Origin: Lepidodermella squamata | Taxonomy: Eukaryota > Animalia > Gastrotricha | DNA length: 64,000 bases | Assembly (NCBI GenBank): GCA_047495785.1 | Contig: JBLDXI010000064.1 | Span: 372,001-436,000, forward strand | Direction of reading: 5' to 3' | Shown: positions 1,072 to 64,000 of the stretch, piece by piece | Numbering within the stretch: position 1 is the first letter of the stretch | Layout: each line of letters begins with the position of its first letter | Position numbers and translations under genes: made by a program | Notes under the pieces: model-generated | Databases searched by the model: none | Told to the model about the DNA's origin: nothing | The model's input: only the letters and a program-made list of their open reading frames with translations

Positions 1072-1118
1072 GTAAGTGAATGTTGTATTTAAAGCATTAT
1101 CTAAAGCATTCAGTCAAG

Positions 1119-1413: not shown

Positions 1414-1860
1414 ATCCGTGAAGTGTACGCAGAATTGTGGAATCTAACAGCCGAGACGGACGACGTGGCGCAGGTTCGGCAACTAGTTTCGGAGATTGAC
1501 GATTCCACTGGTGGCAAGTTCGATCCAAATTGGCGCAACCCAAATGTATCACATTGCGATAAGTCGACTACAAAGAACAGCACCCTGTTATACAGTGTCT
1601 GGCTGTGTTCTGGTCGAGAATCAGACGCGCAGCTGGAAATTGCTCGGCTGCTGTTGGATCGCGGAGCTGATGTGAATGCCAAGGAGGGAAGCTACGGCAT
1701 GACGCCGTTGATTGCAGCGGCTAATAACGGGGATCTCGATGGAGCTCGACTGTTGCTGGATCGCAACGCTGCCATCGAGGCCACTAGTAGCGATGGCTTC
1801 ACTGCGTTGATATATGCCGCTGCATTTGGGAAAGTCGAGATGGTTCGCCTGTTGCTGGAT
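1414..1860 (+). CDS. Ankyrin-repeat coding segment 1, interrupted at LLLD by an element
   Basis: LEIARLLLDRGADVNAK..YGMTPLIAAA..GDLDGARLLLDRNAAIEA..DGFTALIYAAAFGKVEMVRLLLD are canonical ankyrin repeats. Acceptor TTTAG at 1413 is in frame with the 1295 donor. Confidence 0.9.
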
Positions 1861-2500
1861 GGTTGCGCACCAAAGGTCCCACAGGGACGGAGTCCCCAAT
1901 AAGCGATAGAGTACGGCGCATCAGCTACTGCTGATGCGGAAGGGGTTATAGGAAATTTTGGGGAAACTCCTAGGGAAACTCCTGTGATAGCTGTAAAATT
2001 CCAAAAAATACCAAAAAATCGGCCATGTTTCAAAACCTCCAATAACTTTTCTTCAAACATAGCGAACAAACTACTGATTTTTAAACAATTAAAAACCAAA
2101 AAATCGCTCTTCCGGTTACGCAATTGCGCAACTACCTTGACCTAACGGCGTAAGGTCACCGTAGCCGGTCGCCACCACCGCGCGCTGTCGCGCGCGCACA
2201 CGACCACACACGCGTAATCACCGGCGCTCATTATAACCGCGCGCACCTGTGGCTGCGCAACTGCGCCATTCTTTTTATTGTATCGCCGTTAAAAACTTTT
2301 TATGAATTACCGGCTGCCTCCCTCCCCCGGGGGAGGGAGGCATCAGTTATCTTTCTTAAAGAACATGATATTTATCTCCGGTTTGGAGGGTGGGGGAAAT
2401 AAAAACCGGCCGATCTTATTTCATCTATAACTTCACCAAAAATAATCCGAATTTGAAAATTTTTGCGGCAACCGGCAGCTGGTGCCCCGTTTTTCTAGAT
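1861..2500 (+). mobile_element. Single short non-autonomous Helitron-like unit (type A, 640 bp) at ankyrin site 1
   Basis: Junctions ctgGAT|GGTTGCGCACC and CCCCGTTTTTCTAGAT|cgcaac. Both ends are shared with the RepHel-coding element. Boundary is ambiguous by the 3 nt GAT. Confidence 0.9.
2315..2342. other. Perfect 28-bp GC-rich palindrome present in every type A 5' region (first copy given)
   Basis: TGCCTCCCTCCCCC|GGGGGAGGGAGGCA is self-complementary. Confidence 0.9.
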
Positions 2501-2704: not shown

Positions 2705-5265
2705 GGTTGCGCACCAAAGGTCCCACAGGGACGGAGTCCCCAATAAGCCATAGAGTACGGCGCATCAGCTACTGCTGATGCGGAAGGGGTTATAGGAAAT
2801 TTTGGGGAAACTCCTAGGGAAACTCCTGTGATAGCTGTAAAATTCCAAAAAATACCAAAAAATCGGCCATGTTTCAAAACCTCCAATAACTTTTCTTCAA
2901 ACATACCGAACAAACTACTGATTTTTAAACAATTAAAAACGAAAAAATCGCTCTTCCGGTTACGCAATTGCGCAACTACCTTGACCTAACGGCGTAAGGT
3001 CACCGGAGCCGGTCGCCACCACCGCGCGCTGTCGCGCGCGCACACGACCACACACGCGTAATCACCGGCACTCATTATAACCGCGCGCACACTGTGGCTG
3101 CGCCACTGCGCCATTCTTTTTGTTTATTGCCGTTAAAATCTTTTTATGAATTACCAGCTGCCTCCCTCCCCCGGGGGAGGGAGGCATCAGTCATCTTTCT
3201 TAAAAAACATGATATTCAACCCCGGTTTGGAGGGTGGGGGAAATAAAAACCGGCCGATCTTATTTCATCTATAACTTCACCAAAAATAATCCGATTTTGA
3301 AAATTTTTGCGGCAACCGGCAGCTGGTGCCCCGTTTTTCTAGATGGTTGCGCACCAAAGGTCCCACAGGGACGGAGTCCCCATAAGCAATAGAGTACGGC
3401 GCATCAGCCACTGCTGATGCGGATGAGGTTATAGGCCGATTCGCGGAAACTCCTAGGGAAACTCCTGTAATAGCTGTAAAATTCCTAAAAATACCAAAAA
3501 ATCGGCCATGTTTCAAAACCTCCAATGATTTTTCTTCAAACATACCGAACAAACTACTGATTTTTAAACAATTAAAAACGAAAAAATCGCTTCTTCGGTT
3601 ACGCAATTGCGCAACTACCTTGACCTAACGGCGTAAGGTCACCGTAGCCGGTCGCCACCACCGCGCGCGCTGTCGCGCGCGCACACGACCACACACGCGT
3701 AATCACCGGCGCTCATTATAACCGCGCGCACCTGTGGCTGCGCAACTGCGCCATTCTTTTTATTGTATCGCCGTTAAAAACTTTTTATGAATTACCGGCT
3801 GCCTCCCTCCCCCGGGGGAGGGAGGCATCAGTTATCTTTCTTAAAAAACATGATATTTCGCTCCGGTTTGGAGGGTGGGGGAAATAAAAACCGGCCGACC
3901 TTATTTCAACAATAACTTCACCAAAAATAATCCGATTTTGAAAATTTTTGCGGCAACCGGCAGCTGGTGCCCCGTTTTTCTAGATGGTTGCGCACCAAAG
4001 GTCCCACAGGGACGGAGTCCCCAATAAGCGACAGAGTACGGCGCATCAGCGACTGCTGATGCAGAAGGGGTTATGGCCGCTTTGGAATACCTTGCTAGGG
4101 AAATTCCTGTGATACATGTAGAAATTCTAAAAATACCGAAAAATCGGGCAGACTTTCAAGTGGCAGGTAGAAACTTTCCATTTATGCCGCATCAATTGCT
4201 GATTTTTAAAAAATTGAAAACGAATAAATCGCTTCTTTTATTACGCAATTGCGTAACTACCTTGACCTAACGGCGCTAGGTCACCGGAGCCGGTCGCCAC
4301 CGCCGCGCGCTCTCGCGCGCGCACACGACACCTCTTGCGTAATCACCGGCGCTCTATTGTTAACTCACCAGCGCTGTGGCAGCGCTAACAGCGCAACTGG
4401 TATTGGCGCTCGAAACTTTTTATATGCCGTTAAAAACTTTTTATGAATTACCAGCTGCCTCCCTCCCCCGGGGGAGGGAGGCATCAGTCATCTTTCTTAA
4501 AAAACATGATATTCAACCCCGGTTTGGAGGGTGGGGGAAATAAAAACCGGCCGATCTTATTTCATCAATATCTTCATCAAAAATAATCCGAATTTGAAAA
4601 TTTTTGCGGCAACCGGCAGCTGGTGCCCCGTTTTTCTAGATGGTTGCGCACCAAAGGTCCCACAGGGACGGAGTCCCCAATAAGCGATAGAGTACGGCGC
4701 ATCAGCTACTGCTGATGCGGAAGGGGTTATAGGAAATTTTGGGGAAACTCCTAGGGAAACTCCTATGATAGCTGTAAAATTCCAAAAAATACCAAAAAAT
4801 CGGCCATGTTTCAAAACCTCCAATAACTTTTCTTCAAACATAGCGAACAAACTACTGATTTTTAAACAATTAAAAACGAAAAAATCGCCGCTTCAGTTAC
4901 GCAACTACCTTGACCTAACGGCGTAAGGTCACCGGAGCCGGTCGCCACCACCGCGCGCGCGCACACGGCCACACACGCGTAATCACCGGCACTCATTATT
5001 ACCGCGCGCACACTGTGGCTGCGCCACTGCGCCATTCTTTTTGTTTATTGCCGTTAAAAACTTTTTATGAATTACCGGCTGCCTCCCTCCCCCGGGGGAG
5101 GGAGGCATCAGTTATCTTTCTTAAAAAACATGGTATTTAACTCCGGTTTGGAGGGTGGGGGAAATAATAACCGGCCGACCTTATTTCATCAATAACTTCA
5201 CCAAAAATAATCCGATTTTGAAAATTTTTGCGGCAACCGGCAGCTGGTGCCCCGCTTTTCTAGAT
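2705..5265 (+). mobile_element. Four head-to-tail type A units (2705-3344, 3345-3985, 3986-4641, 4642-5265) at ankyrin site 2
   Basis: Repeated TTCTAGAT|GGTTGCGCACC junctions; the units are non-identical subtypes. Confidence 0.9.
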
Positions 5266-8200
5266 GATTGCGCGAACCAACCCGATAGGGTTCCCCTAGC
5301 GGCGGAGCCGCAGCCTGAACCGGAGGTCCAGCGCCTCTCTCTCAACTTCGCCGGTCGAGGCGACTATGGTAGAGGCGTTTTGCGCTGGACGAAAAACAAA
5401 CCTAGGGAATTTTAACGATAAAAATATGGAAAAATAAGTCGTAGATAGATCTTTTTTCGAAGTTATGGACAAACTTTTTTTTGCAAGTTTCACCATACGG
5501 CTGATTTTTGGCGATTTTTTATTCATAAAAAAAATGGAGAACTGCTCATTAATATTCATGAGCTGCTTACGCCGCCGTCTGGGTCACGGATACCGGCACC
5601 CTCATGACCGAGGTTGATTGCATCACACGCGAGAGCCAGGTCGTTGCGGCGCGTCTCTTCGAAATTTCAATTTAAAACCAGTTTGGCGGCCCTCCCTGGG
5701 GGGAGGGCTGCATCAGTGACATTCTGCTAAAAATTCTGCATCGAACAGTCTAAATTTTGTTGATAGGCGATGAACGGTTGATTTTCTATCGAATTTACAA
5801 GTTGCGCGTACATGAAAAAGTGGCGCTCACTCACTGTGTGTGAAATTTTCAAGGCGCGTGTGACACCCAGATAGGTGCATAATTTGTCGTGACAAATTCG
5901 GATTTTTAGATACTAGGAAGGACGGCCGATTTTTTGGTACCAAAACCGCCGTAAGATTCGCAAGATTTCCTTTGACTATAGCGTTTGGCGCGCGATTGAT
6001 TTTTAGTAAAATTAAAAATTTCAATTTTGTCGAGTTTCGTCAATTTTTTTTGACACCTCACCCTGGTAGCGCTCATGTTTGAATGCACGTAGAATGTAGC
6101 AAATTTTGCGCTGAATTTTTAGAGACCAACCTCGTCATTGTAACCCTCATGGTTGTTGCACTATAAGAGGCGCGGTAAATCGCATTTTTCAACCCATTTT
6201 TAGTGCGCGGCGGCGCTCACACACACACTCAGGGTCGATTTCGGTCAAATATTGAGCACGTGCAGTAGTCTTGTGCGCACATACAAATCATTCAGTCCGA
6301 CGTAAAATTTCAAGACGAATCGAACGAGACCACGCCCATCGTCGTAGCACTCACAGTTATTTGCCTATAGAAGGCGCGGTCTATCCACCTTAAAATTTCA
6401 AAATTTCGATGTTTTTGTGATTTTTTCGCGACAGTTTGGAAGAGTCCCTGTGTAATAATGCAACTATTTCTAGTACAAAAATTGACGGGCTTTCGAGCGG
6501 TGAAAACCGCATGTCACCACCTATAACGGTTGTTTGCCTATAAGCCTCGCGGTGAAATGTGAGATAAAAATCAAAGCAAGTACATTTCGAAATTTCGCTT
6601 TTATATTTACGGGTCATATTTCGCTGCGACTTCATTGACGAATTTTCATGAGACATAAGTTATTCGGGGCGTTCTACTTGACGGTACATGCCTCACATTC
6701 ATAAGACACACCTATTTGATGCCACGCCCAAGCCAAAGTCAATTTTTATATATTTTGTTGACCAACTTTGCAATCTCATGTTCCTCATTTTCTTCATTCC
6801 CGCTGTTATATAAATGATTCTAACGCTTAGAGCATAGTAGGCTGGCCAATTAAAGACCAGGCTGGTCGTTTTAGCCCTTTTATTTATGGAGCTACTTATT
6901 TATCGCGCGGTAAAATATCAATTTTTTCGGCTATCGTCAATTTTTTTGACACCTCACCCGCGTAGCGCTCGTATTTGAATGACCCTAGATTGTAGCAAAT
7001 TTTGCGCAGAATTTTTAGAGACCAGCCGCGTCATTGTAGCCCACATGGTTGTTGCACTATAAGAGGCGCGGCAAATCGCGTTTTTCAGCCGATTTTTAGT
7101 GCGCAGCGGCGCTCACACACGCACTCACACGCACTTTCTGTCAAATTTGAAACACATGCAGCAGTGTTGTGCGCACATACCCGTTACACAGGCCGACGTA
7201 GAATTTCAAGACGAACCGAACAAGACTAAGCCCATCTTCGTAGCCCTCATAGTTATTTGCCTATAGTAGGCGCGGTAGAACTTGTTTTGATCCAACTTAA
7301 AACTTGAAATTTCGAGATTTCGACGTTTTTGTGAATTTTTTCGCGACAATACAGAAGCGACCGGGCGTAATGTAATAGCCATATCTAGTACAACATTTCA
7401 CGGGCTATCCACGGGTGAAAACCGCAAGCCGATATCAGCTGCCGTTTTTTGCCCGTAAGCCTCGCGGTAAAATTTGAGATAAAAAACAAGCCCTATCAAT
7501 TTCAAAATATCACTTCTGCAGTTCTGGGTCATATTCTAATGCGAGTTCAGTGGCGAATTTTCATGAGAAATGGGTAATTCGAGGAGCTCTATCGAACGGT
7601 AAATGTCTCATCTTGACAAGGCGCACCCATTTGACAGCACACCCTTTTCTAAGGTCAAAATTTGAACGGGGCCGCGCTTGCATAAAAACAAGTTTCACTC
7701 AAGTATCGCATATCATTCGATAGCCTGTGTTATTCAGGCTTTCATGGGAGTGGTTATTTGTTAAAACAATAAAGTTTGACGCCGCAATTGACCAAAAACT
7801 GATATTTGACATTCGATTTCCCGCCGATCAGGCGCCCGTAATTTTTCCTCATGTTTATTTTGAAAACTAATTTTTTTTATTTTTTCATCATGGTTCAAAT
7901 TGAGTTATAAGCCTGTTTCCCCGTTTTTAGCCCACTTCAAGGTAGCAAAGCACCTCGTTATTACTTGTGAATAATGAAACCATATTGAGGGTAATGAAAG
8001 TGTGCGCCGCCGCGGTTAGCCAGACCATGACCCAGATAGCCAGTTAACCGAGTCACACGACGTAGATAGAGTTATTGGGACATCAATCCCGGTTGCTGCC
8101 ATTCTCGAGGGAATATTGAAGATTGGGGAGGGGCGAAAAGTTCCCCTCCAAGATGGCTAGGAGGGGAATTTCAAGGGGTAGTGATTTAAACCGACTCAAC

Positions 8201-8268
8201 CATTCATGCTCAGCGCAAAGGTGCCAAAACGAACCAAATTAATGTCCTAGCATGGTTTTTTACTGGAT
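5266..8268 (+). mobile_element. Type B non-autonomous element (~3.0 kb) with two diverged ~0.9 kb internal repeats
   Basis: Starts GATTGCGCGAACC, ends TTTTTTACTGGAT. Recurs at 53567 and 61752. Internal repeats start near 6040 and 6935 (gtcaatttttttgacacctcaccc). No credible ORF. Confidence 0.85.
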
Positions 8269-8924
8269 GGTTGCGCACCAAAGGTCCCACAGGGACGAAG
8301 TCCCCAATAAGCGACAGAGTACGGCGCATCAGCGACTGCTGATGCAGAAGGGGTTATGGCCGCTTTGGAATACCTTGCTAGGGAAATTCCTGTGATACAT
8401 GTAGAAAATCTAAAAATACCGAAAAATCGGGCAGGCTTTCAAGTGGCGGGTAGAAACTTTCCATTTTTGCCGCATCAATTGCTGATTTTTAAAAAATTAA
8501 AAACGAAAAAATCGCATTATTTATTACGCAATTGCGTAACTACCTTGACCTAACGGCGCTAGGTCACCGGAGCCGGTCGCCACTGCCGCGCGCTCTCGCG
8601 CGCGCACACGACACCTCTTGCGTAATCACCGGCGCTCTATTGTTAACTCACGCGCTCCGTGGCAGCGCTAATAGCGCAACTGGTAGTGGCGCTCGAAACT
8701 TTTTATATGCCGTTAAAAACTTTTTATGAATTACCGGCTGCCTCCCTCCCCCGGGGGAGGGAGGCATCAGTTATCTTTCTTAAAAAACGTGATATTTAAC
8801 TCCGGTTTGGAGGGTGGGGGAAATAAAAACCGGCCGACCTTATTTCATCAATAACTTCACCAAAAATAATCCGAATTTGAAAATTTTTGCGGCAACCGGC
8901 AGCTGGTGCCCCGTTTTTCTAGAT
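8269..8924 (+). mobile_element. Type A unit, last copy at ankyrin site 2
   Basis: ACTGGAT|GGTTGCG start and TTCTAGAT|cgcaaa end. Absent from the inverted copy at ~58.1 kb. Confidence 0.9.
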
Positions 8925-9026
8925 CGCAAAGCTTCCACGGAAGTCAAAAATAGCAGAGGCTACACTACGTTGATGACTGTTGCAACTGAGAGCGTGCCAG
9001 TTGAAATTCTACAACTTTTGCTAGAT
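8925..9026 (+). CDS. Ankyrin-repeat segment 3 (one repeat, 102 nt) between insertion sites 2 and 3
   Basis: RKASTEVKNSRGYTTLMTVATESVPVEILQLLLD continues segment 2 in frame. Confidence 0.8.
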
Positions 9027-10973
9027 GGTTGCGCACCAAAGGTCCCACAGGGACGAAGTCCCCAATAAGCGACAGAGTACGGCGCATCAGCGACTGCTGA
9101 TGCAGAAGGGGTTATGGCCGCTTTGGAATACCTTGCTAGGGAAATTCCTGTGATACATGTAGAAAATCTAAAAATACCGAAAAATCGGGCAGGCTTTCAA
9201 GTGGCGGCTAGAAACTTTCCATTTTTGCCGCATCAATTGCTGATTTTTAAAAAATTAAAAACGAAAAAATCGCATTATTTATTACGCAATTGCGTAACTA
9301 CCTTGACCTAACGGCGCTAGGTCACCGGAGCCACTGCCGCGCGCTCTCGCGCGCGCACACGACACCTCTTGCGTAATCACCGGCGCTCTATTGTTAACTC
9401 ACGCGCTCCGTGGCAGCGCTAATAGCGCAACTGGTAGTGGCGCTCGAAACTTTTTATATGCCGTTAAAAACTTTTTATGAATTACCGGCTGCCTCCCTCC
9501 CCCGGGGGAGGGAGGCATCAGTTATCTTTCTTAAAAAACGTGATATTTAACTCCGGTTTGGAGGGTGGGGGAAATAAAAACCGGCCGACCTTATTTCATC
9601 AATAACTTCGCCAAAAATAATCCGAATTTGAAAATTTTTGCGGCAACCGGCAGCTGGTGCCCCGTTTTTCTAGATGGTTGCGCACCAAAGGTCCCACAGG
9701 GACGAAGTCCCCAATAAGCGACAGAGTACGGCGCATCAGCGACTGCTGATGCAGAAGGGGTTATGGCCGCTTTGGAATACCTTGCTAGGGAAATTCTTGT
9801 GATACTTGTAGAAAATCTAAAAATACCGAAAAATCGGGCAGGCTTTCAAGTGGCGGCTAGAAACTTTCCATTTTTGCCGCATCAATTGCTGATTTTTAAA
9901 AAATTAAAAACGAAAAAATCGCATTATTTATTACGCAATTGCGTAACTACCTTGACCTAACGGCGCTAGGTCACCGGAGCCGGTCGCCACTGCCGCACAC
10001 GACACCTCTTGCGTAATCACCGGCGCTCTATTGTTAACTCACGCGCTCCGTGGCAGCGCTAATAGCGCAACTGGTAGTGGCGCTCGAAACTTTTTATATG
10101 CCGTTAAAAACTTTTTATGAATTACCGGCTGCCTCCCTCCCCCGGGGGAGGGAGGCATCAGTTATCTTTCTTAAAAAACGTGATATTTAACTCCGGTTTG
10201 GAGGGTGGGGGAAATAAAAACCGGCCGACCTTATTTCATCAATAACTTCACCAAAAATAATCCGATTTTGAAAATTTTTGCGGCAACCGGCAGCTGGTGC
10301 CCCGTTTTTCTAGATGGTTGCGCACCAAAGGTCCCACAGGGACGGAGTCCCCAATACAAAATGCCGCATGCCGCTTTAGCTATCGCTGCCAAGCGTATGA
10401 GGTATATGGCGGTACTGCATTTTTCGCGCAGGGAAACGAATATTTCAGTTATAAATATGAAAAAAATACTGAAAAATCGGCAAGCTTTTCAAGTCTCAGG
10501 TAAAAACTTTCCAATATAATCGCAATAATTTCTGATTTTTAAACAATTAAAAACGAAAAAATCGCTTTATGAATGACGCAACTACTTGACCTAACGGCGC
10601 TAGGTCACCGCTGCCGTACGCCACCACCGCCGCGCGCGCGTCGGTCGCGCGCGCACACGACACCTATTGCGTAATCGCCGGCGCTCTATTGTTAACTCAC
10701 GCGCTCTGTGGCAGCGCTAGGAGCGCAACAGGTAGTGGCGCTCGAAACTTTTTATATGCCGTTAAAAACTTTTTATGAATTACCAGCTGCCTCCCTCCCC
10801 CGGGGGAGGGAGGCATCAGTTATCTTTCTTAAAAAACGTGATATTTAACTCCGGTTTGGAGGGTGGGGGAAATAAAAACCGGCCGACCTTATTTCATCAA
10901 TAACTTCACCAAAAATAATCCGAATTTGAAAATTTTTGCGGCAACCGGCAGCTGGTGCCCCGTTTCTCTAGAT
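9027..10973 (+). mobile_element. Three type A units (9027-9675, 9676-10315, 10316-10973) at ankyrin site 3
   Basis: Host ttgCTAGAT|GGTTGCG followed by repeated unit junctions. Confidence 0.9.
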
Positions 10974-11433
10974 GATTGCGCACCAACGGTCCCACAGGGA
11001 CGGAGTCCCCAATAAGCGATAGAGTACGGCGCATCAGCTACTGCTGATGCGGAAGGGGTTATAGGAAATTTTGGGGAAACTCCTAGGGAAACTCCTGTGA
11101 TAGCTGTAAAATTGCAAAAAATACCAAAAAATCGGCCATGTTTCAAAACCTCCAATAACTTTTCTTCAAATATAACGAACAAACTACTGATTTTAAAACA
11201 TTTTAATACGAAAAAATCGCCTTTTCGGTTACACAATTGCGTAATTACGTTGACCTAACGGCGCTAGGTCACCGGAGCCAGTCGCCAGCGCCGCGCACAC
11301 GACCACAGAAGCGTAATCACCGGCGCTCTATTGTTACTGTGCGCACACTGTGGTTACGCCGTTGAAAACAATTTAACTATGACAAGCTGCCTCCCTCCCC
11401 GGGGGGAGGGAGGCATGAAGAACAAGGAAGTCA

Positions 11434-13215
11434 GTGTTCGCCCGCGTGAACACTTGAAAAGTCAACGTTGACTAATCACCTGTTATTGGAGTATAGGCGT
11501 GGCCTATATCGTTAGAATCGGCGAAGAATTGTGCACATTTGGGCTGCTCACTGAGACGTGTGTGATGTTGTGAAGGGGATTGCGGCCGACAAACGTGTTT
11601 GCAACCAAGCTGTTAATAATCAGCGCGCGCACAACAAGTACGCACAATAACATGACTGTGCAACAAGGCTAATTTTTTATCATTTCAGCTTGTGCGTGTA
11701 TGAGCGTGTTTGATATTGAAAGTAATGGCAAAGAATTCTGCAGTTAATGATATAAAAATTATCTGCGCGCAGTTTTTGTTTCGCAGCGAATTGCGTGAAA
11801 ACACTTGGTAAATACGTCCTTCAATGTGTTCGCCCGCGTGAACAATTGAAAAGTCAACGTTGACTAATCACCTGTTATTGGAGTATAGGCGTGGCCTATA
11901 TCGTTAGAATCGGCGAAGAATTGTGCACATTTGGGCTGCTCACTGAGACGTGTGTGATGTTGTGAAGGGGATTGCGGCCGACAAACGTGTTTGCAACCAA
12001 GCTGTTAATAATCAGCGCGCGCACAACAAGTACGCACAATAACATGACTGTGCAACAAGGCTAATTTTTTATCATTTCAGCTTGTGCGTGTATGAGCGTG
12101 TTTGATATTGAAAGTAATGGCAAAGAATTCTGCAGTTAATGATATAAAAATTATCTGCGCGCAGCTTTTGTTTCGCAGCGAATTGCGTGAAAACACTTGG
12201 TAAATACGTCCTTCAATGTGTTCGCCCGCGTGAACAATTGAAAAGTCAACGTTGACTAATCACCTGTTATTGGAGTATAGGCGTGGCCTATATCGTTAGA
12301 ATCGGCGAAGAATTGTGCACATTTGGGCTGCTCACTGAGACGTGTGTGATGTTGTGAAGGGGATTGCGGCCGACAAACGTGTTTGCAACCAAGCTGTTAA
12401 TAATCAGCGCGCGCACAACAAGTACGCACAATAACATGACTGTGCAACAAGGCTAATTTTTTATCATTTCAGCTTGTGCGTGTATGAGCGTGTTTGATAT
12501 TGAAAGTAATGGCAAAGAATTCTGCAGTTAATGATATAAAAATTATCTGCGCGCAGCTTTTGTTTCGCAGCGAATTGCGTGAAAACACTTGGTAAATACG
12601 TCCTTCAATGTGTTCGCCCGCGTGAACAATTGAAAAGTCAACGTTGACTAATCACCTGTTATTGGAGTATAGGCGTGGCCTATATCGTTAGAATCGGCGA
12701 AGAATTGTGCACATTTGGGCTGCTCACTGAGACGTGTGTGATGTTGTGAAGGGGATTGCGGCCGACAAACGTGTTTGCAACCAAGCTGTTAATAATCAGC
12801 GCGCGCACAACAAGTACGCACAATAACATGACTGTGCAACAAGGCTAATTTTTTATCATTTCAGCTTGTGCGTGTATGAGCGTGTTTGATATTGAAAGTA
12901 ATGGCAAAGAATTCTGCAGTTAATGATATAAAAATTATCTGCGCGCAGCTTTTGTTTCGCAGCGAATTGCGTGAAAACACTTGGTAAATACGTCCTTCAA
13001 TGTGTTCGCCCGCGTGAACAATTGAAAAGTCAACGTTGACTAATCACCTGTTATTGGAGTATAGGCGTGGCCTATATCGTTAGAATCGGCGAAGAATTGT
13101 GCACATTTGGGCTGCTCACTGAGACGTGTGTGATGTTGTGAAGGGGATTGCGGCCGACAAACGTGTTTGCAACCAAGCTGTTAATAATCAGCGCGCGCAC
13201 AACAAGTACGCACAA
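11434..13215. repeat. 392-bp tandem array, ~4.5 copies
   Basis: gttcgcccgcgtgaaca recurs at 11436, 11828, 12220, 12612 and 13004. Confidence 0.95.
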
Positions 13216-13704
13216 GTACGGAGTCCCCAATAAGCGACAGAGTACGGCGCATCAGTGACTGCTGATGCAGAAGGGGTTATGGCCGCTTTGGAATACCTTG
13301 CTAGGGAAATTCCTGTGATACATGTAGAAATTCTAAAAATACCGAAAAATCCGGCAGGCTTTCAAGTGGCAGGTAGAAACTTTTCATTTTTGCCGCACCA
13401 ATCGCTGATTTTTAAAGAATTAAAAACGAAAAAATCGCTTTATTTATTACGCAATTGCGTAACTACCTTGACCTAACGGCGCTAGGTCACCAGTCCGGTC
13501 GCCACCGCCGCCATCACGACAGTGTTAACGTAATCACTAGCACTCTTCTATAACCGCACGCACGCTGTGACAGCGCTATCAGCGAAAGAAGTATTGCCGT
13601 GAAAAACTTTTTATCAATTACAGGCTGCCTCCCTCCCCCGGGGGAGGGAGGCATCACTTATCTTCATTAGGGAGCAAGACATTTCTGAAAATCTAGCAAA
13701 ATTC

Positions 13705-52252: not shown

Positions 52253-53566
52253 GGTTGCGCACCAAAGGTCCCACAGGGACGGAGTCCCCAATACAAAATG
52301 CCGCATGGCGCTTTAGCTATCGCTGCCAAGCGTATGAGGTATATGGCGGTACCACATTTTTCGCATAGGGAAACGAATATTACAGTTACAAAATTAAAAA
52401 AAATACTGAAAAATCGGCGAGCTTTTTAAGTCTCATGTAAAAACTTTCCAGCATAATCGCAATAATTTCTGATTTTTAAACAATTAAAAACGAAAAAATC
52501 GCTTTATTGATTACGCAACAACTTGACCTAACGGCGCTAGGTCACCGGTGCCGTACGCCACCACCGCCGCGCGCGCGACGGACGCGCGCGCACACGACAC
52601 CTATTGCGTAATCGCCGGCGCACAGCTATAACCGCGCGCACATTGTGGTAGCGCTAGGAGCGCAACAGGTAGTGGCGCTCGAAACTTTTTATATGCCGTT
52701 AAAAACTTTTTATGAATTACCGGCTGCCTCCCTCCCCCGGGGGAGGGAGGCTTCAATCATCTTTCTTAAAAAACATGATATTCAACCCCAGTTTGGAGGG
52801 TGGGGGGAAATAAAAACCGGCCGATCTTATTTCATCTATAACTTCACCAAAAATAATCCGATTTTGAAAATTTTTGCGGCAACCGGCAGCTGGTGCCCCG
52901 TTTTTCTAGATGGTTGCGCACCAAAGGTCCCACAGGGACGAAGTCCCCAATAAGCGACAGAGTACGGCGCATCAGCGACTGCTGATGCAGAAGGGGTTAT
53001 GGCCGCTTTGGAATACCTTGCTAGGGAAATTCCTGTGATACATGTAGAAAATCTAAAAATACCAAAAAATCGGGCAGGCTTTCAAGTGGCGGGTAGAAAC
53101 TTTTCATTTTTTCCGCATCAATTGCTGATTTTTAAAGAATTAAAAACGAAAAAATCGCTTAATCGATGACGCAACAACTTGACCTAACGGCGCTAGGTCA
53201 CCGGTGCCGTACGCCACCACCGCCGCGCGCGCGTCGGTCGCGCGCGCACACGACACCTATTGCGTAATCGCCGGCGCACTGCTATAACCGCGCGCACACA
53301 GTGGCAGCGCTAGGAGCGCAACAGGTAGTGGCGCTCGAAACTTTTTATTCGCCGTTAAAAACTTTTTATGAATTACCAGCTGCCTCCCTCCCCCGGGGGA
53401 GGGAGGCATCAGTTATCTTTCTTTAAAAACATGATATTCAACCCCGGTTTGGAGGGTGGGGGAAATAAAAACCGGCCGATCTTATTTCATCAATAACTTC
53501 ACCAAAAATAATCCGAATTTGAAAATTTTTGCGGCAACCGGCAGCTGGTGCCCCGTTTTTCTAGAT
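52253..53566 (+). mobile_element. Two type A units (52253-52911, 52912-53566)
   Basis: TTCTAGAT|GGTTGCG junctions directly after the large element's 3' end. Confidence 0.9.
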
Positions 53567-56548
53567 GATTGCGCGAACCAACCCGATAGGGTTCCCCTAG
53601 CGGCGGAGCCGCAGCCTGAACCGGAGGTCCAGCGCCTCTCTCTCAACTTCGCCGGTCGAGGCGACTATGGTAGAGGCGTTTTGCGCTGGACGAAAAACAA
53701 ACCTAGGGAAACGAATTTTAACGATAAAAATATGGAAAAATAAGTCTTAGATAGATCTTTTTTCGAAGTTATTGACAAACTTTTTTTTGCAAGTTTCACC
53801 ATACGGCTGATTTTTGGCGATTTTTTATTCATAAAATAACTGCTCCACCGCTCATTAATATTCATGAGCTACTTACGCCGCCGTCTGGGTCACGGTTACC
53901 GGCACCCTCATGACCGAGGTTAATTACCTCACACGCGAGAGCCGGGTCGTTGCGATGCATCTCTTCGAAATTTCAATCTAAAACCAGTTTGGCGGCCCTC
54001 CCTGGGGGGAGGGCAGCATCAGTGACATTCTACGGAAAATTCTGCATCGAACAGTCTAAATTTGGACGCTGGGCGATAAACGGTTGATTTTTTATTGAAT
54101 TTACAAGTTGCGCGCACTTGAAAAAGTAGCCCTCACTAACTGTATGTGAAACTTTCAAGGCGCGGGTGCCACCCAGATAGCTGCGGAATTTGTCGGGACA
54201 AAGTCGGTTTTTTAGATAGTAGAAAAGATGGCCGATTTTTTGGTACCAAAACCGCTGCGAGATTCGCAAGATTTCCTTTGACTATAGCGTTTGGCGCGCG
54301 ATAGATTTTTAGTGAAAATTAAAATTTCAGTTTTTTGGAGTTTCGTCAATTTTTTTGACACCTCACCCGGTTAGCGCTCAGGTTTAATTGCACGTAGAAT
54401 GTAGCAAATTTTGCGCAGAATTTTTAGAGACCAGCCGCGTCATTGTAGCCCTCATGGTTGTTGCACTATAAGAGGCGCGGCAAATCGCGTTTTCAGCCTA
54501 TTTTTAGCGCGCCGGCGGCGCTCACACACACACTCAGGGTCGATTTCGGTCAAATATTAAGCACGTGCAGTAGTTTTGTGCGCACATACAAATCATTCAG
54601 TCCGACGTAAAATTTCAAGACGAATCGAACGAGACCGCGCCCATCGCCGTAGCACTCACAGTTATTTCCCTATAGAAGGCGCGGTCTATCCACCTTAAAA
54701 TTTCAAAATTTCGATGTTTTTGTTATTTTTTCGCGACAGTTTGGAAGAGTCCCTGTGTTATAATGCAACCATTTCTAGTACAAAAATTGACGGGCTTTCG
54801 AACGGTGAAAACCGCATGTCACCACCTATCACGGTTGGTTGCCTATTATAAGCCTCGCGGTAAAATGTGAGATAAAAATCAAAGCAAGTACATTTCGAAA
54901 TTTCGCTTTTATATTTACGGGTCATATTTCACTGCGACTTTTCATGAGACATAAGTTATTCGGAGCGTTCTACTTGACGGTACATGGTACATGCCTCGCA
55001 TTCATAAGACACGCCCATTTGATGCCACGCCCAAGCCAACGCCAATTTTTATATATTTTGTTGACCAACTTTGTACTCTCATGTTCCTCATTTTCTTCAT
55101 TCGCGCTGTTATATAAATGATTCCAACGCTTAGAGCATAGTAGGCTGGATAATTTAAGACCAGGCTGGTCGTTTTAGCCCTTTTTTTTTATGGAGCTACT
55201 TATTTATGGAGCGGTAAAATTTCAATTTTTTCGGCTGTCGTCAATTTTTTTGACACCTCACCCGGGTAGCGCTCAGGTTTAATTGCACGTAGAATTTTGC
55301 GCAGAATTTTTTGAGACCAGCCGGGTCATTGTAGCCCTCATGGTTGTTGCACTATAAGAGGCGCGGCAAATCGCGTTTTTCAACCTATTTTTAGCGTGCC
55401 GGCCGCACTCACGCGCTCACAGTGAGTCGATATCTGTCAAATTTAAAACACATGCAGCAGCTTTGTGCGCACATAGCAATAATACAGGCGGACGTAGAAT
55501 TTCAAGACGAATCGAACGAGCCTAGGCCCATCGTCGTAGCCCTTATGTTTTTTTGTGTATAAGCGCCGCGGTAAATCTTGCTTCGATCCACCTTAAAACT
55601 GGAAAATTTCGAAATTTCGATTTTTTTGTGAATTTTTTCGCGACAATACGGAAGCGTCCGGGCGTTATTTAATTTCCATTGCTAGTGCAACATTTCACGG
55701 GCTATGCAACAGTGACAACCGCAAGTCAATATCAGCTACCGTTTTTTGCTCGTAGCCCACGCGGTAAAATTAGAGATAAAAACAAACCAAGCATATTTTG
55801 AAATTTCGCTTGCCCGATTCTGGGTCTTATTCAACAGCATGTTCAGTTGCGAATTTTCATGAGAAATGGGTAACTCGAGGCGCTCTGTCGAACGGTACAT
55901 GTCTCACTTTCACGAGGCGCACCTATTTGACAGCACACCATATGCCAGGGTCAAATTTTGAGCAGGGCCGCGCCAACAGGCAAACAAGTTTCAAATATAT
56001 GTATCTTATGTTATTTGATAGCTTGAGTTATTTGCTATATCCTGGAGCTGTTTTTTGTCAAAATATTCAAATTTTGGCACTAAAATTGACCAAAAACTGA
56101 TTTTCGACATGAAATGTGCTGCCGGTGACGCCCGTGTTTTTCGTTGACGATATGAAAACCAATTCTCTTTGGATCATGGTAAATTAACTTGTAAGCCTGT
56201 TCTCCTATTTTTAGCTTATTTCGAGGTAATAATGCAGAAACCGCAATTTGTACATAATGAAATTATATTGAGGGTAACAATATAAGTGTGCGCCGCCGCC
56301 GTTAACCGGGTCGTGACCCAGATAACCAGTTAACAAGGTAATAAGATGTAGATAGGTTTATTAAGGCATCGATTACTGCATTTTCGAGAGAATATTGAAG
56401 ATTCGGGAGGGGCGAAAAAAGTTCCCCTCCAAGATGGCTAGGAGGGGAATTTCAAGGGGTAGTGACGTAACCCGCCTAAACTTGTCATGCTCAGCGCAAA
56501 GCTGCCAAAACGAACCAAATAATTTCCTAGCATGGTTTTTTACTGGAT
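53567..56548 (+). mobile_element. Type B element, diverged copy
   Basis: Same termini as 5266-8268 with many internal substitutions. Confidence 0.85.
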
Positions 56549-59500
56549 GGTTGCGCACCAAAGGTCCCACAGGGACGGAGTCCCCAATAAGCGATAGAGT
56601 ACGGCGCATCAGCTACTGCTGATGCGGAAGGGGTTATAGGAAATTTTGGGGAAACTCCTAGGGAAACTCCTGTGATAGCTGTAAAATTCCAAAAAATACC
56701 AAAAAATCGGCCATGTTTCAAAACCTCCAATAACTTTTCTTCAAACATAGCGAACAAACTACTGATTTTTAAACAATAAAAAACGAAAAAATCGCTCTTC
56801 CGGTTACGCAATTGCGCAACTACCTTGACCTAACGGCGTAAGGTCACCGTAGCCGGTCGCCAGCACCGCGCGCTGTCGCGCGCGCACACGACCACACACG
56901 CGTAATCACCGGCGCTCATTATAACCGCGCGCACCTGTGGCTGCGCAACTGCGCCATTCTTTTTATTGTTGTGCGCGCGCTGATTATTAACAGCTTGGTT
57001 GCAAACACGTTTGTCGGCCGCAATCCCCTTCACAACATCACACACGTCTCAGTGAGCAGCCCAAATGTGCACAATTCTTCGCCGATTCTAACGATATAGG
57101 CCACGCCTATACTCCAATAACAGGTGATTAGTCAACGTTGACTTTTCAATTGTTCACGCGGGCGAACACATTGAAGGACGTATTTACCAAGTGTTTTCAC
57201 GCAATTCGCTGCGAAACAAAAACTGCGCGCAGATAATTTTTATATCATTAACTGCAGAATTCTTTGCCATTACTTTCAATATCAAACACGCTCATACACG
57301 CACAAGCTGAAATGATAAAAAATTAGCCTTGTTGCACAGTCATGTTATTGTGCGTACTTGTTGTGCGCGCGCTGATTATTAACAGCTTGGTTGCAAACAC
57401 GTTTGTCGGCCGCAATCCCCTTCACAACATCACACACGTCTCAGTGAGCAGCCCAAATGTGCACAATTCTTCGCCGATTCTAACGATATAGGCCACGCCT
57501 ATACTCCAATAACAGGTGATTAGTCAACGTTGACTTTTCAAGTGTTCACGCGGGCGAACACTGACTTCCTTGTTCTTCATGCCTCCCTCCCCCCGGGGAG
57601 GGAGGCAGCTTGTCATAGTTAAATTGTTTTCAACGGCGTAACCACAGTGTGCGCACAGTAACAATAGAGCGCCGGTGATTACGCTTCTGTGGTCGTGTGC
57701 GCGGCGCTGGCGACTGGCTCCGGTGACCTAGCGCCGTTAGGTCAACGTAATTACGCAATTGTGTAACCGAAAAGGCGATTTTTTCGTATTAAAATGTTTT
57801 AAAATCAGTAGTTTGTTCGTTATATTTGAAGAAAAGTTATTGGAGGTTTTGAAACATGGCCGATTTTTTGGTATTTTTTGCAATTTTACAGCTATCACAG
57901 GAGTTTCCCTAGGAGTTTCCCCAAAATTTCCTATAACCCCTTCCGCATCAGCAGTAGCTGATGCGCCGTACTCTATCGCTTATTGGGGACTCCGTCCCTG
58001 TGGGACCGTTGGTGCGCAATCATCTAGCAAAAGTTGTAGAATTTCAACTGGCACGCTCTCAGTTGCAACAGTCATCAACGTAGTGTAGCCTCTGCTATTT
58101 TTGACTTCCGTGGAAGCTTTGCGATCCAGTAAAAAACCATGCTAGGACATTAATTTGGTTCGTTTTGGCAGCCACCATCGCCACCACCGCGCGCTATCGC
58201 GCGCGCACACGACCACACACGCGTAATCACCGGCGCTCATTATAACCGCGCGCACCTGTGGCTGCGCAACTGCGCCATTCTTTTTATTGTATCGCCGTTA
58301 AAAACTTTTTATGAATTACCGGCTGCCTCCCTCCCCCGGGGGAGGGAGGCATCAGTTATCTTTCTTAAAAAACATGATGTTCAACCCCGGTTTGGAGGGT
58401 GGGGGAAATAAAAACCGGCCGATCTTATTTCATCAATAACTTCACTAAAAATAATCCGATTTTGAAAATTTTTGCGGCAACCGGCAGCTGGTGCCCCGTT
58501 TTTCTAGATGGTTGCGCACCAAAGGTCCCACAGGGACGGAGTCCCCAATAAGCGATAGAGTACGGCGCATCAGCTACTGCTGATGCGGAAGGGGTTATAG
58601 GAAATTTTGGGGAAACTCCTAGGGAAACTCCTGTGATAGCTGTAAAATTCCAAAAAATACCAAAAAATCGGCCATGTTTCAAAACCTCCAATAACTTTTC
58701 TTCAAACATAGCGAACAAACTACTGATTTTTAAACAATAAAAAACGAAAAAATCGCTCTTCCGGTTACGCAATTGCGCAACTACCTTGACCTAACGGCGT
58801 AAGGTCACCGTAGCCGGTCGCCAGCACCGCGCGCTGTCGCGCGCGCACACGACCACACACGCGTAATCACCGGCGCTCATTATAACCGCGCGCACCTGTG
58901 GCTGCGCAACTGCGCCATTCTTTTTATTGTATCGCCGTTAAAAACTTTTTATGAATTACCGGCTGCCTCCCTCCCCCGGGGGAGGGAGGCATCAGTTATC
59001 TTTCTTAAAAAACATGATGTTCAACCCCGGTTTGGAGGGTGGGGGAAATAAAAACCGGCCGATCTTATTTCATCAATAACTTCACTAAAAATAATCCGAT
59101 TTTGAAAATTTTTGCGGCAACCGGCAGCTGGTGCCCCGTTTTTCTAGATGGTTGCGCACCAAAGGTCCCACAGGGACGGAGTCCCCAATAAGCGATAGAG
59201 TACGGCGCATCAGCTACTGCTGATGCGGAAGGGGTTATAGGAAATTTTGGGGAAACTCCTAGGGAAACTCCTGTGATAGCTGTAAAATTCCAAAAAATAC
59301 CAAAAAATCGGCCATGTTTCAAAACCTCCAATAATTTTTCTTCAAACATACCGAACAAACTACTGATTTTTAAACAATTAAAAACGAAAAAATCGTTTCT
59401 TCGGTTACGCAATTGCGCAACTACCTTAACCTAACGGCGTAAGGTCACCGGAGCCGGTCGCCACCACCGCGCGCTGTCGCGCGCGCACACGACCACACAC

Positions 59501-61751
59501 GCGTAATCACCGGCGCTCATTATAACCGCACGCACACTGTGGCTGCGCCACTGCGCCATTCTTTTTGTTTATTGCCGTTAAAAACTTTTTATGAATTACC
59601 GTCTGCCTCCCTCCCCCGGGGGAGGGAGGCATCAGTTATCTTTCTTAAAAAACATGATATTTAACTCCGGTTTGGAGGGTGGGGGAAATAAAAACCGGCC
59701 GACCTTATTTCTTCAATAACTTCACCAAAAATAATCCGAATTTGAAAATTTTTGCGGCAACCGGCAGCTGGTGCCCCGTTTTTCTAGATGGTTGCGCACC
59801 AAAGGTCCCACAGGGACGGAGTCCCCAATACAAAATGCCGCATGGCGCTTTAGCTATCGCTGCCAAGCGTATGAGGTATATGGCGGTACCACATTTTTCG
59901 CATAGGGAAACGAATATTACAGTTACAAAATTAAAAAAAATACTGAAAAATCGGCGAGCTTTTTAAGTCTCATGTAAAAACTTTCCAGCATAATCGCAAT
60001 AATTTCTGATTTTTAAACAATTAAAAACGAAAAAATCGCTTTATTGATTACGCAACAACTTGACCTAACGGCGCTAGGTCACCGGTGCCGTACGCCACCA
60101 CCGCCGCGCGCGCGACGGACGCGCGCGCACACGACACCTATTGCGTAATCGCCGGCGCACAGCTATAACCGCGCGCACATTGTGGTAGCGCTAGGAGCGC
60201 AACAGGTAGTGGCGCTCGAAACTTTTTATATGCCGTTAAAAACTTTTTATGAATTACCGGCTGCCTCCCTCCCCCGGGGGAGGGAGGCTTCAATCATCTT
60301 TCTTAAAAAACATGATATTCAACCCCAGTTTGGAGGGTGGGGGGAAATAAAAACCGGCCGATCTTATTTCATCTATAACTTCACCAAAAATAATCCGATT
60401 TTGAAAATTTTTGCGGCAACCGGCAGCTGGTGCCCCGTTTTTCTAGATGGTTGCGCACCAAAGGTCCCACAGGGACGGAGTCCCCAATACAAAATGCCGC
60501 ATGGCGCTTTAGCTATCGCTGCCAAGCGTATGAGGTATATGGCGGTGCTGCATTTTTCGCGTAGGGAAACGAATATTTCAGTTATAAATATGAAAAAAAT
60601 ACTGAAAAATCGGCGAGCCTTTCAAGTCTCAGGTAAAAACTTTCCACCATAATCGCAATTATTCCTGATTTTTAACAAATTAAAAACGAAAAAATCGCTT
60701 TATCGATGACGCAACAACTTGACCTAACGGCGCGAGGTCACCGGTGCCGTACGCCACCACCGCCGCGCGCGCGACGGTCGCGCGCGCACACGACACCTAT
60801 TGCGTAATCGCCGGCGCTCTATTGTTAACTCACGCGCTCTGTGGCAGCGCTAGGAGCGCAACAGGTAGTGGCGCTCGAAACTTTTTATTCGCCGTTAAAA
60901 ACTTTTTATGAATTACCAGCTGCCTCCCTCCCCCGGGGGAGGGAGGCATCAGTTATCTTTCTTAAAAAACATGATATTCAAACCCGGTTTGGAGGGTGGG
61001 GGAAATAAAAACCGGCCGATCTTATTTCATCAATAACTTCACCAAAAATAATCCGATTTTGAAAATTTTTGCGGCAACCGGCAGCTGGTGCCCCGTTTTT
61101 CTAGATGATTGCGCACCAAAGGTCCCACAGGGACGGAGTCCCCAATACAAAATGCCGCATGGCGCTTTAGCTATCGCTGCCAAGCGTATGAGGTATATGG
61201 CGGTACCACATTTTTCGCATAGGGAAACGAATATTACAGTTACAAAAATTAGAAAAATACCGAAAAATTGGCGAGCCTTTCAAGTCTCAGGTAAAAACTT
61301 TCCAATATAATCGCAATAATTTCTGATTTTTAATAAATTAAAAACGAAAAAATCGCTTTATCGATGACGCAACAACTTGACCTAACGGCGCTAGGTCACC
61401 GGTGCCGTACGCCACCACCGCCGCGCGCGCGCACACGACACCTATTGCGTAATCGCCGGCGCTCTATTGTTAACTCACGCGCTCTGTGGCAGCGCTAGGA
61501 GCGCAACAGGTAGTGGCGCTCGAAACTTTTTATATGCCGTTAAAAACTTTTTATGAATTACCGGCTGCCTCCCTCCCCCGGGGGAGGGAGGCATCAGTTA
61601 TCTTTCTTAAAAAACATGATGTTCAACCCCGGTTTGGAGGGTGGGGGAAATAAAAACCGGCCGACCTTATTTCATCAATAACTTCACCAAAAATAATCCG
61701 ATTTTGAAAATTTTTGCGGCAACCGGCAGCTGGTGCCCCGTTTTTCTAGAT
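56549..61751 (+). mobile_element. Six type A units (56549-58509 interrupted, 58510-59149, 59150-59789, 59790-60448, 60449-61106, 61107-61751)
   Basis: Repeated CTAGAT|GGTTG or CTAGAT|GATTG junctions. Confidence 0.9.
56966..58172 (-). other. Inverted templated insertion: type B 3' end + ankyrin segment 3 + large-element 5' end + ~1.5 copies of the 392-bp repeat
   Basis: Reverse complement of 8222-8268 + 8925-9026 + 10974-~12030. Flanked by a ~110 bp re-copy of the host unit, with ttgt microhomology at the left junction. Confidence 0.9.
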
Positions 61752-64000
61752 GATTGCGCGAACCAACCCGATAGGGTTCCCCTAGCGGCGGAGCCGCAGC
61801 CTGAACCGGAGGTCCAGCGCCTCTCTCTCAACTTCGCCGGTCGAGGCGACTATGGTAGAGGCGTTTTGCGCTGGACGAAAAACAAACCTAGGGAAACGAA
61901 TTTTAACGATAAAAATATGGAAAAATAAGTCGTAGATAGATCTTTTTTCGAAGTTATGGACAAACTTTTTTTTGCAAGTTTCACCATACGGCTGATTTTT
62001 GGCGATTTTTTATTCATAAAAAAAATGGAGAACTGCTCATTAATATTCATGAGCTGCTTACGCCGCCGTCTGGGTCACGGATACCGGCACCCTCATGACC
62101 GAGGTTGATTGCATCACACGCGAGAGCCAGGTCGTTGCGGCGCGTCTCTTCGAAATTTCAATTTAAAACCAGTTTGGCGGCCCTCCCTGGGGGGAGGGCT
62201 GCATCAGTGACATTCTGCTAAAAATTCTGCATCGAACAGTCTAAATTTTGTTGATAGGCGATGAACGGTTGATTTTCTATCGAATTTACAAGTTGCGCGT
62301 ACATGAAAAAGTGGCGCTCACTCACTGTGTGTGAAATTTTCAAGGCGCGTGTGACACCCAGATAGGTGCATAATTTGTCGTGACAAAGTCGGATTTTTAG
62401 ATACTAGGAAGGACGGCCGATTTTTTGGTACCAAAACCGCCGTAAGATTCGCAAGATTTCCTTTGACTATAGCGTTTGGCGCGCGATTGATTTTTAGTAA
62501 AATTAAAAATTTCAATTTTGTCGAGTTTCGTCAATTTTTTTTGACACCTCACCCTGGTAGCGCTCATGTTTGAATGCACGTAGAATGTAGCAAATTTTGC
62601 GCTGAATTTTTAGAGACCAACCTCGTCATTGTAACCCTCATGGTTGTTGCACTATAAGAGGCGCGGTAAATCGCATTTTTCAACCCATTTTTAGTGCGCG
62701 GCGGCGCTCACACACACACTCAGGGTCGATTTCGGTCAAATATTGAGCACGTGCAGTAGTCTTGTGCGCACATACAAATCATTCAGTCCGACGTAAAATT
62801 TCAAGACGAATCGAACGAGACCACGCCCATCGTCGTAGCACTCACAGTTATTTGCCTATAGAAGGCGCGGTCTATCCACCTTAAAATTTCAAAATTTCGA
62901 TGTTTTTGTGATTTTTTCGCGACAGTTTGGAAGAGTCCCTGTGTAATAATGCAACTATTTCTAGTACAAAAATTGACGGGCTTTCGAGCGGTGAAAACCG
63001 CATGTCACCACCTATAACGGTTGTTTGCCTATAAGCCTCGCGGTGAAATGTGAGATAAAAATCAAAGCAAGTACATTTCGAAATTTCGCTTTTATATTTA
63101 CGGGTCATATTTCGCTGCGACTTCATTGACGAATTTTCATGAGACATAAGTTATTCGGGGCGTTCTACTTGACGGTACATGCCTCACATTCATAAGACAC
63201 ACCTATTTGATGCCACGCCCAAGCCAAAGTCAATTTTTATATATTTTGTTGACCAACTTTGCAATCTCATGTTCCTCATTTTCTTCATTCCCGCTGTTAT
63301 ATAAATGATTCTAACGCTTAGAGCATAGTAGGCTGGCCAATTAAAGACCAGGCTGGTCGTTTTAGCCCTTTTATTTATGGAGCTACTTATTTATCGCGCG
63401 GTAAAATATCAATTTTTTCGGCTATCGTCAATTTTTTTGACACCTCACCCGCGTAGCGCTCGTATTTGAATGACCCTAGATTGTAGCAAATTTTGCGCAG
63501 AATTTTTAGAGACCAGCCGCGTCATTGTAGCCCACATGGTTGTTGCACTATAAGAGGCGCGGCAAATCGCGTTTTTCAGCCGATTTTTAGTGCGCAGCGG
63601 CGCTCACACACGCACTCACACGCACTTTCTGTCAAATTTGAAACACATGCAGCAGTGTTGTGCGCACATACCCGTTACACAGGCCGACGTAGAATTTCAA
63701 GACGAACCGAACAAGACTAAGCCCATCTTCGTAGCCCTCATAGTTATTTGCCTATAGTAGGCGCGGTAGAACTTGTTTTGATCCAACTTAAAACTTGAAA
63801 TTTCGAGATTTCGACGTTTTTGTGAATTTTTTCGCGACAATACAGAAGCGACCGGGCGTAATGTAATAGCCATATCTAGTACAACATTTCACGGGCTATC
63901 CACGGGTGAAAACCGCAAGCCGATATCAGCTGCCGTTTTTTGCCCGTAAGCCTCGCGGTAAAATTTGAGATAAAAAACAAGCCCTATCAATTTCAAAATA
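61752..64000 (+). mobile_element. Type B element, truncated by the window end
   Basis: Near-identical to 5266 onward. Confidence 0.88.

Follow-up and report, generated by a model that had tools for sequence, protein, structure and literature searches.

A Helitron-like family in the gastrotrich Lepidodermella squamata that probably inserts after CTNGAT, a word matching its own 3' terminus

The window analyzed here is a 64,000-nucleotide stretch of the Lepidodermella squamata genome (121 Mb), positions 372,001 to 436,000 of contig JBLDXI010000064.1 (G000:C64:372001-436000). Ankyrin coding begins at about position 1423 (Pfam Ank), and from 1861 on nearly all of the window consists of one repeat family on the + strand. 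Our analysis indicates that this is, very probably, a group-2 (Helentron/Helitron2-like) Helitron-like family that inserts after the word CTNGAT, or more loosely YTNRAT, without recognizing ankyrin sequence. The family is made up of one giant Rep-PIF1-GIY-YIG element together with non-autonomous derivatives of 640 bp (A640) and 3 kb (B3k). The element's own 3' terminus is CTAGAT or CTGGAT, and the junctions between units read CTAGAT^GRTTGCGC (^ marks the junction). Since the 3' end of the element is itself the target word, resident ends are also targets, and mixed head-to-tail arrays accumulate.

Results

CTNGAT at insertion junctions across the genome

A census of the genome was based on two 5'-end probes, of which the A640 5' end occurs 47 times and the B3k 5' end 28 times. 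At 29 loci taken around these ends, every 5' end that was not preceded by the 3' end of another unit was read, which gave 29 junctions (28 independent) on 17 contigs and from two subfamilies, 25 of them outside the window. The bases on the 5' side of the junction (n = 29) were C24/T5 at -6, T28 at -5, any base at -4, G24/A5 at -3, A28 at -2 and T29 at -1. Positions -7 to -20 of the same 29 junctions looked random, with no visible signal. CTNGAT was found at 24 junctions, including all 14 that are headed by an A640 unit, and all junctions fit YTNRAT save for single deviations at -5 and -2. The joined sequence CTNGAT^GRTTGCGC occurs 82 times in the genome, compared with one occurrence of a reversed control. 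One of the 82 belongs to an autonomous relative on another contig (C29, 78% identical), which has CTTGAT at its 5' junction and a 3' end that reads ...TTTTTCTGGAT. An earlier reading of the window, made from its sequence only, had proposed a specificity well beyond an AT or TT dinucleotide; the logo of the 28 independent junctions bears this out, and the word fixes the orientation of the insert.

The 3' flanks of 21 array ends showed neither a target duplication nor a strong consensus. The first base after the array (+1) was G in nine cases, T in five, A in four and C in three, a post-hoc excess of G; GGA, found in 5/21, was likewise in excess post hoc. A 6-bp target duplication was considered and rejected, as the 3' word remains CTAGAT whatever the host base at N. 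The insertion point is resolvable only to within the shared GAT, and moving it one base to the left makes it an A^T insertion.

Members of the family also interrupt exons of other genes, namely those for ANF_receptor and neurotransmitter-gated channel ligand-binding domains (L018:3012-3602(-), L017:2987-3358(-), L009:5055-5384(-)). Exon splitting by the CTNGAT family is not rare in the genome.

The giant element and its short derivatives

Every unit in the window starts with GGTTGCGC or GATTGCGC and ends with TTTCTAGAT (A640 units and the giant element) or TTACTGGAT (B3k units). Motif mapping, together with a BLAST search of the window with the 640-bp unit, shows the units adjoining each other without a spacer and all on the + strand. 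They are arranged as follows:

1861-2500, + strand: solo A640, subfamily I, non-autonomous, 640 bp, start GGTTGCGCACC, end TTTTTCTAGAT
2705-8924, + strand: head-to-tail array 2, six units (motif mapping and BLAST)
2705-3344, 3345-3985, 3986-4641, 4642-5265 and 8269-8924, + strand: A640 units of array 2
5266-8268, + strand: B3k of array 2, end TTACTGGAT
9027-9675, 9676-10315 and 10316-10973, + strand: three A640 opening array 3, absent from an inverted fossil copy of the locus (see below)
10974-52252, + strand: giant autonomous-type element, 41.3 kb
52253-52911 and 52912-53566, + strand: two A640 after the giant element
53567-56548, + strand: B3k after those two A640
56549-58509, + strand: A640 interrupted by an inverted captured segment
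starts at 58510, 59150, 59790, 60449 and 61107, + strand: five A640
from 61752, past the window to window-equivalent 64759, + strand: last B3k

At its 5' end the giant element matches the 640-bp unit over ~440 nt (10976-11416) with 83% identity, and at its 3' end over 126 nt (52127-52252) with 95% identity (BLAST), which confirms the earlier observation that the inserts share both termini with a RepHel element. Given these common ends, the short units are internal-deletion derivatives of the giant element. A start of the RepHel element at GATTGCGC at 44164 was also considered; this is a chance 8-mer within an open reading frame (ORF) with no target word before it, and the true start is 10974.

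The transposase gene of the giant element has GT-AG introns and comprises:

45471-48029, + strand: Rep (HUH, two-tyrosine) exon, with HVH and YLVKY motifs in the translation
49091-50783, + strand: PIF1 helicase exons, then the start of a GIY-YIG nuclease domain

The Rep exon matched Pfam Helitron_like_N at E 5.7e-4, below the curated cut-off, and its Atlas look-alikes were 95% Helitron_like_N, at 0.95. The helicase was matched at 49091-50131 (Pfam PIF1, E 1e-15). The GIY-YIG domain that follows gave a weak Pfam match (E 0.03) and Atlas look-alikes at 0.91, and domain searches of the giant element found no AP endonuclease domain after the helicase. This Rep is present as a single genomic copy, with its closest genomic relatives 78% (C29) and 61% (C64:720 kb) identical, and the nearest named relative of the transposase is a protein of the ostracod Cyprideis torosa. 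A sequence search of solved structures with Rep and with the C-terminal piece returned nothing useful.

Upstream of the transposase gene, the giant element carries satellite cargo:

11434-13215: 392-bp satellite, 4.5 copies
13705-19144, 23581-29435 and 33064-40299: 425-bp satellite in three blocks of 12.8, 13.8 and 17 copies, 99% identical

The satellites sit in ~10-kb higher-order repeats that are 99.4-99.5% identical, and each higher-order repeat also contains a decayed core of the 640-bp unit (13195-13684, 23071-23560). A duplicated 265-aa ORF (20518-21315, 30809-31606) had no Pfam match, and further cargo ORFs were seen at 40728-43188 and 44058-45335.

Elsewhere in the genome a different Rep family, 35% identical, was found at C42:1249693-1340154 and C20:3101754-3169731. 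Its ~15 kb spacing, with identical scores, suggests tandem arrays of ~15-kb autonomous elements. A family 'X' (GGAGGCGCG...) follows A640 at L007 and L008; it has only four copies and no clear junction rule.

Three insertions in one ankyrin gene

The host gene is broken into the following segments:

1423-1860, + strand: host ankyrin coding segment (Pfam Ank, E 5e-18); its 3' end is the occupied CTGGAT at 1855-1860, and an empty CTGGAT lies at 1756-1761
2501-2704, + strand: host ankyrin segment of two repeats (Pfam Ank_4/Ank), with an empty CTGGAT at 2600-2605 and an occupied CTGGAT at 2699-2704
8925-9026, + strand: host ankyrin repeat (tblastn match to sister repeats), with the occupied CTAGAT 9021-9026 at its end

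Based on sequence reading and motif mapping, the junctions on the + strand are ttgCTGGAT^GGTTGCGC at 1860/1861, ctgCTGGAT^GGTTGCGC at 2704/2705 and ttgCTAGAT^GGTTGCGC at 9026/9027. Each lies at the Leu-Asp codon pair with which an ankyrin repeat ends, and the codon is the same in the different repeats. After the insert end ...TTTCTAGAT, the host frame restarts exactly at 2501 (cgc aac) and at 8925 (cgc aaa). Array 3 extends beyond the window, and a pattern search placed its end at window-equivalent 64759; the sequence that follows, CAC GGC GCA GAT ATC (HGADI), is the usual continuation of an ankyrin repeat, and the frame is restored there too. With the frame restored at each of these points, all three inserts are precise. 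Look-alike sites (ttgctggatcgcaac) at 1753-1767 and 2597-2611 are empty. On the locus itself the sequence-only reading thus holds: it had reported insertion at the same nucleotide of different repeats, a single orientation of the inserts, an exact restart of the host frame and two matching sites left empty.

In two public runs, no record joined exon to exon across an insert; these gave short contigs and paralogous ankyrin cross-matches only, and no run was recorded as RNA. One 280-nt contig (run X2, record 12) spans 2476-2704, i.e., insert tail plus exon, followed by 51 nt that differ from the window. It could come from an allele of another sample in which the second insertion site (2704) is unfilled.

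Neighbouring introns are short; their donors read GTAAGT and their acceptors are of the TTTCAG type. Directly upstream of the ankyrin region and on the same strand, the left end of the window (591-1294) holds the last part of a trypsin domain and a sushi (CCP) exon (Pfam).

Why one gene was hit three times

A maximum-likelihood tree of 38 units resolved three subfamilies, each mixed across loci. In this tree the unit at 1861 does not pair with that at 2705 as its sister, and the one at 9027 falls in a different subfamily; the three insertions are therefore independent. The LLLD repeats spell CTN-GAT once per 99 bp, which makes an ankyrin gene rich in targets. The junctions are also clustered, with 9/28 on C4 (2.4% of the genome, binomial P ~1e-8) and 5/28 on C64 (0.8% of the genome), and the giant element is located at the third insertion site. 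Short-range reinsertion into a target-rich gene, where we infer the short range, would suffice for the three-site pattern.

Growth of the arrays

A record of an earlier state of the locus is preserved in inverted form:

57579-58175, - strand: inverted fossil of the locus, in which a B3k tail, the ankyrin repeat 8925-9026 and the 5' end of the giant element are directly joined, with no A640 between them

The A640 that hosts the fossil (56549-58509) contains a foreign stretch of ~1.2 kb; unit positions 309-421 (113 bp) are duplicated and flank it on both sides. The fossil segment carries a 102-bp ankyrin exon. The foreign segment looks like the result of template switching or of gene-fragment capture by a rolling-circle element. 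Compared with the fossil, the present locus has one added unit (8269-8924) after the CTGGAT of B3k and three added units (9027-10973) after the host CTAGAT. As the fossil lacks both additions, it provides a filled-versus-empty comparison at two CTNGAT sites, and this comparison of sequences shows that new units land after a CTNGAT that already borders a resident element. Across the units examined, 46 of 49 A640 3' ends are directly followed by another element, and B3k units usually close the arrays.

Evidence against the CTNGAT reading and rival explanations

Several observations weigh against a family that inserts after CTNGAT and builds its arrays in this way. Five of the 15 junctions headed by B3k are off CTNGAT (TTTAAT twice, TTCAAT, TCTAAT and TTTAGT), so the specificity for the word is not absolute. 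The only RepHel copy with matching termini bears a helicase frame change at ~50050-50075 where there is no room for an intron, and therefore this copy is probably broken, or the assembly is in error there. Three of ~28 events fell at ankyrin LLLD sites, which represent <0.1% of CTNGAT sites; this is a nominal excess that comes from a single locus. Finally, three identical 659-bp units are adjacent in L001, and A640+B3k composites recur at several loci, so concatemer formation or read-through mobilisation also builds arrays.

This last point raises the question of whether the arrays come mainly from rolling-circle read-through, or from concatemers that move as composites, with the hexamer mattering for the first landing only. 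Besides the L001 units, one and the same A640+B3k-variant composite is present both at C4:2.39 Mb and at C42:1.18 Mb, where the host flanks differ, and A640 almost always lies upstream of B3k. However, two junctions gained units after the state seen in the fossil copy, and adjacent units are usually of different subfamilies. We regard this as unlikely to be the main route, although it is the most serious of the rivals. Read-through is compatible with insertion after CTNGAT and probably acts alongside it.

The sequence-only reading had proposed that the family recognizes an extended motif, YTGCTRGAT, with the LLLD codons of ankyrin repeats as its target. It had named in advance a short-motif preference in a genome-wide flank logo as a result that would count against it, and a short-motif preference only is what the logo gave. 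Information is confined to -6 to -1, and outside the window YTG at -9 to -7 occurs in one of 25 junctions, as often as expected by chance. None of the 25 non-window flanks is ankyrin: tblastn of the window's ankyrin protein against the 600 nt 5' of each junction found ankyrin at the window's own sites only, and a Pfam search of open-frame flanks found no ankyrin, with ANF-receptor and neurotransmitter-gated channel domains instead. Conversely, YTGCTRGAT followed by Arg-Asn-Ala codons stands uninterrupted at least 164 times (control 3), in many ankyrin genes and at 99-bp spacing. Some of these empty full-motif sites lie 5 kb from the window, and dozens lie on C4, where the family is commonest.

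It could still be argued that the transposase reads ~9 nt and uses the LLLD codons as a multicopy safe target. All three insertions in the gene are at LLLD codons, the unrelated junction L003 also has TTGCTGGAT, and there is the nominal ankyrin excess relative to the share of CTNGAT sites. Yet the 2.2 kb of host sequence in the window contain 11 CTNGAT, five of which are LLLD sites, so that three out of three insertions at LLLD has P ~0.06; the lack of information at -7 to -9 and the empty full-motif sites likewise stand against it. The ankyrin-target reading is already largely refuted, and we give it very little credence. Nor does the family behave like R1/R2, Dada or Pokey, site-specific transposons that keep nearly all their copies in one long conserved target within a multicopy gene: here 25/28 junctions are in unrelated sequence, and the ankyrin sites counted above stand empty.

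The genome contains a very large family of ankyrin genes with near-identical LLLDRNA repeat ends every 99 bp, on C4 (1.42-2.04 Mb), C10 (0.36 Mb), C36 and C42.

Equally improbable is that a single insertion was spread to other repeats by unequal crossing-over, gene conversion or segmental duplication. The repeats are indeed tandem paralogues, and local duplication does occur in the arrays (identical units in L001 and L004, large internal repeats). Against this, the unit at 1861 and its counterpart at 2705 are not nearest relatives and that at 9027 is of another subfamily, the ankyrin repeats diverge from one another far more than the inserts do, and the contents of the arrays differ at the three sites. 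That the inserts act as introns is hardly credible either: A640 has a G^GT start and a pyrimidine tract with an AG^AT end, and splicing of GTTGCG...CCCCGTTTTTCTAG as an intron would preserve the frame and leave three bases, one extra Asp codon, but GTTGCG makes a donor quite unlike the GTAAGT that neighbouring introns use, B3k begins with GAT and has no GT, the third insert measures 55.7 kb against 40-90 nt for introns in the genome, and a junction-spanning record is absent from the public runs.

Discussion

Comparison with known rolling-circle elements

The giant element has the hallmarks of a RepHel transposon, with an HUH Rep containing two tyrosines, PIF1 fused downstream, no target duplication and a fixed orientation. 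HLE2 elements have been described as adding a nuclease domain to RepHel, carrying satellites as cargo, giving rise to non-autonomous derivatives and occurring in tandem (PMC4067079, PMC11417382, PMC7492417). The present family resembles Helentron/Helitron2 in each of these features. It further shares with them a short inverted repeat, here GGTTGC at the 5' tip and GCAACC ~30 nt from the 3' end (5' GGTTGCGC versus 3' subterminal GCGGCAACC, 29-37 nt from the end), as well as the lack of target duplication and a small 3' hairpin, here a short GGCA...TGCC stem, with a T run after it.

The insertion site and the nuclease set it apart. According to reviews and annotation tools, the insertion site is A-T for group-1 elements and T-T for those of group 2 (PMC11417382, PMC4067079, PMC10288648). 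Whereas Helentron/Helitron2 elements insert at T-T in T-rich sequence, the 5' flank here is a defined hexamer, CTNGAT, and the 3' flank is free, with the mixed +1 bases given above (G9/T5/A4/C3 of 21). The nuclease is GIY-YIG-like, with a weak match, and not the AP endonuclease of Helentrons sensu stricto; GIY-YIG has been mentioned for one HLE2 family, HelenSM92 (PMC11417382). The CTNGAT rule thus departs from the T-T insertion described for group 2, and a precedent is the TNAT^A preference in Fusarium oxysporum, where the Helitron2-like FoHeli1 and FoHeli2 insert between TNAT and A (PMC5148889). As in FoHeli1/FoHeli2, the 5' target word is extended, fixes the orientation and ends in AT. In contrast to their three specified bases with A at +1, five bases are specified here (CT.GAT), the element itself ends in the target word, and its copies as a rule stand in arrays.

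With canonical Helitrons (HLE1, e.g., Helraiser) the family shares a Rep-PIF1 rolling-circle transposase and the absence of target duplication. A boundary drawn one base further left, still inside the shared GAT, makes the insertion A/T and the element end CTAGA, near the canonical CTRR; only by this shift do the A^T site and the CTAG-like end appear. Unlike HLE1, the element has no 5' TC (its 5' end is GGTTGCGC or GATTGCGC), it has a terminal inverted repeat and a much longer target word, and its Rep matches Helitron_like_N only weakly.

Bacterial HUH transposons are similar in mode of action. IS608 inserts in an orientation-specific manner beside a short fixed word, which is reused as the cleavage site in the next round. 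IS91 inserts in a fixed orientation beside a fixed tetranucleotide, which then becomes part of the cleavage site of the next round (PMC10288648). The likeness to IS91/ISCR and IS200/IS605 is one of mode of action only and implies no family membership; these are prokaryotic elements, without a fused helicase and with other words. Helitrons of Paramecium, a second precedent for a longer word, have been proposed to insert into one strand of the C4A2 telomere repeat, which would fix their orientation (PMC13085455). They resemble the present family in their short word-specific, one-strand insertion, but their target is a tandem non-coding chromosome end, and they form a separate third Helitron-like clade. 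In the literature that we searched, neither a CT.GAT rule nor a target equal to the element's own terminus was described.

A possible mechanism

A simple model can be proposed in which the HUH nuclease would read the hexamer as nick and joining site, at element ends and in target DNA alike. Wherever it met the hexamer in single-stranded DNA, it would cut and join behind it: in the target, at the 3' end of the element, and where the two ends meet in a circular intermediate. Integration would put the host word before the 5' end and so recreate the site for a further round. Each resident 3' end would become a target again, as would each junction between a host word and a 5' end, giving rise to mixed head-to-tail arrays. 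The ankyrin gene, rich in targets and beside the giant element, may then have been struck three times by short-range reinsertion. That this is an HUH transposase lineage using CTNGAT (then weakly G) as terminator, as joined-end junction and as genomic target is a real possibility, though one we would place slightly short of an even call.

Implications

The ankyrin story itself is ordinary. What matters more widely is that Helitron-like elements are annotated by an 'A-T or T-T' rule, on which HELIANO filters, and that families with a specific five-base word would escape such tools or be given wrong boundaries. A target word that equals the terminus offers a simple explanation for head-to-tail Helitron arrays and for the seeding of satellites. 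It would also amount to a defined single-strand nick motif of a eukaryotic HUH nuclease, with possible use as an HUH-tag. In host genes, every Leu-Asp codon pair spelled CTN-GAT is open to insertion, which would account for the repeated splitting of exons by this family in the genome. If the hexamer does serve as terminator, junction and target, the family would be the first among eukaryotic rolling-circle elements to follow an IS91/IS608-like rule in which the target is the cleavage site, and homing to resident ends, mixed tandem arrays, the seeding of satellites and the splitting of Leu-Asp codons in any exon would all follow from it.

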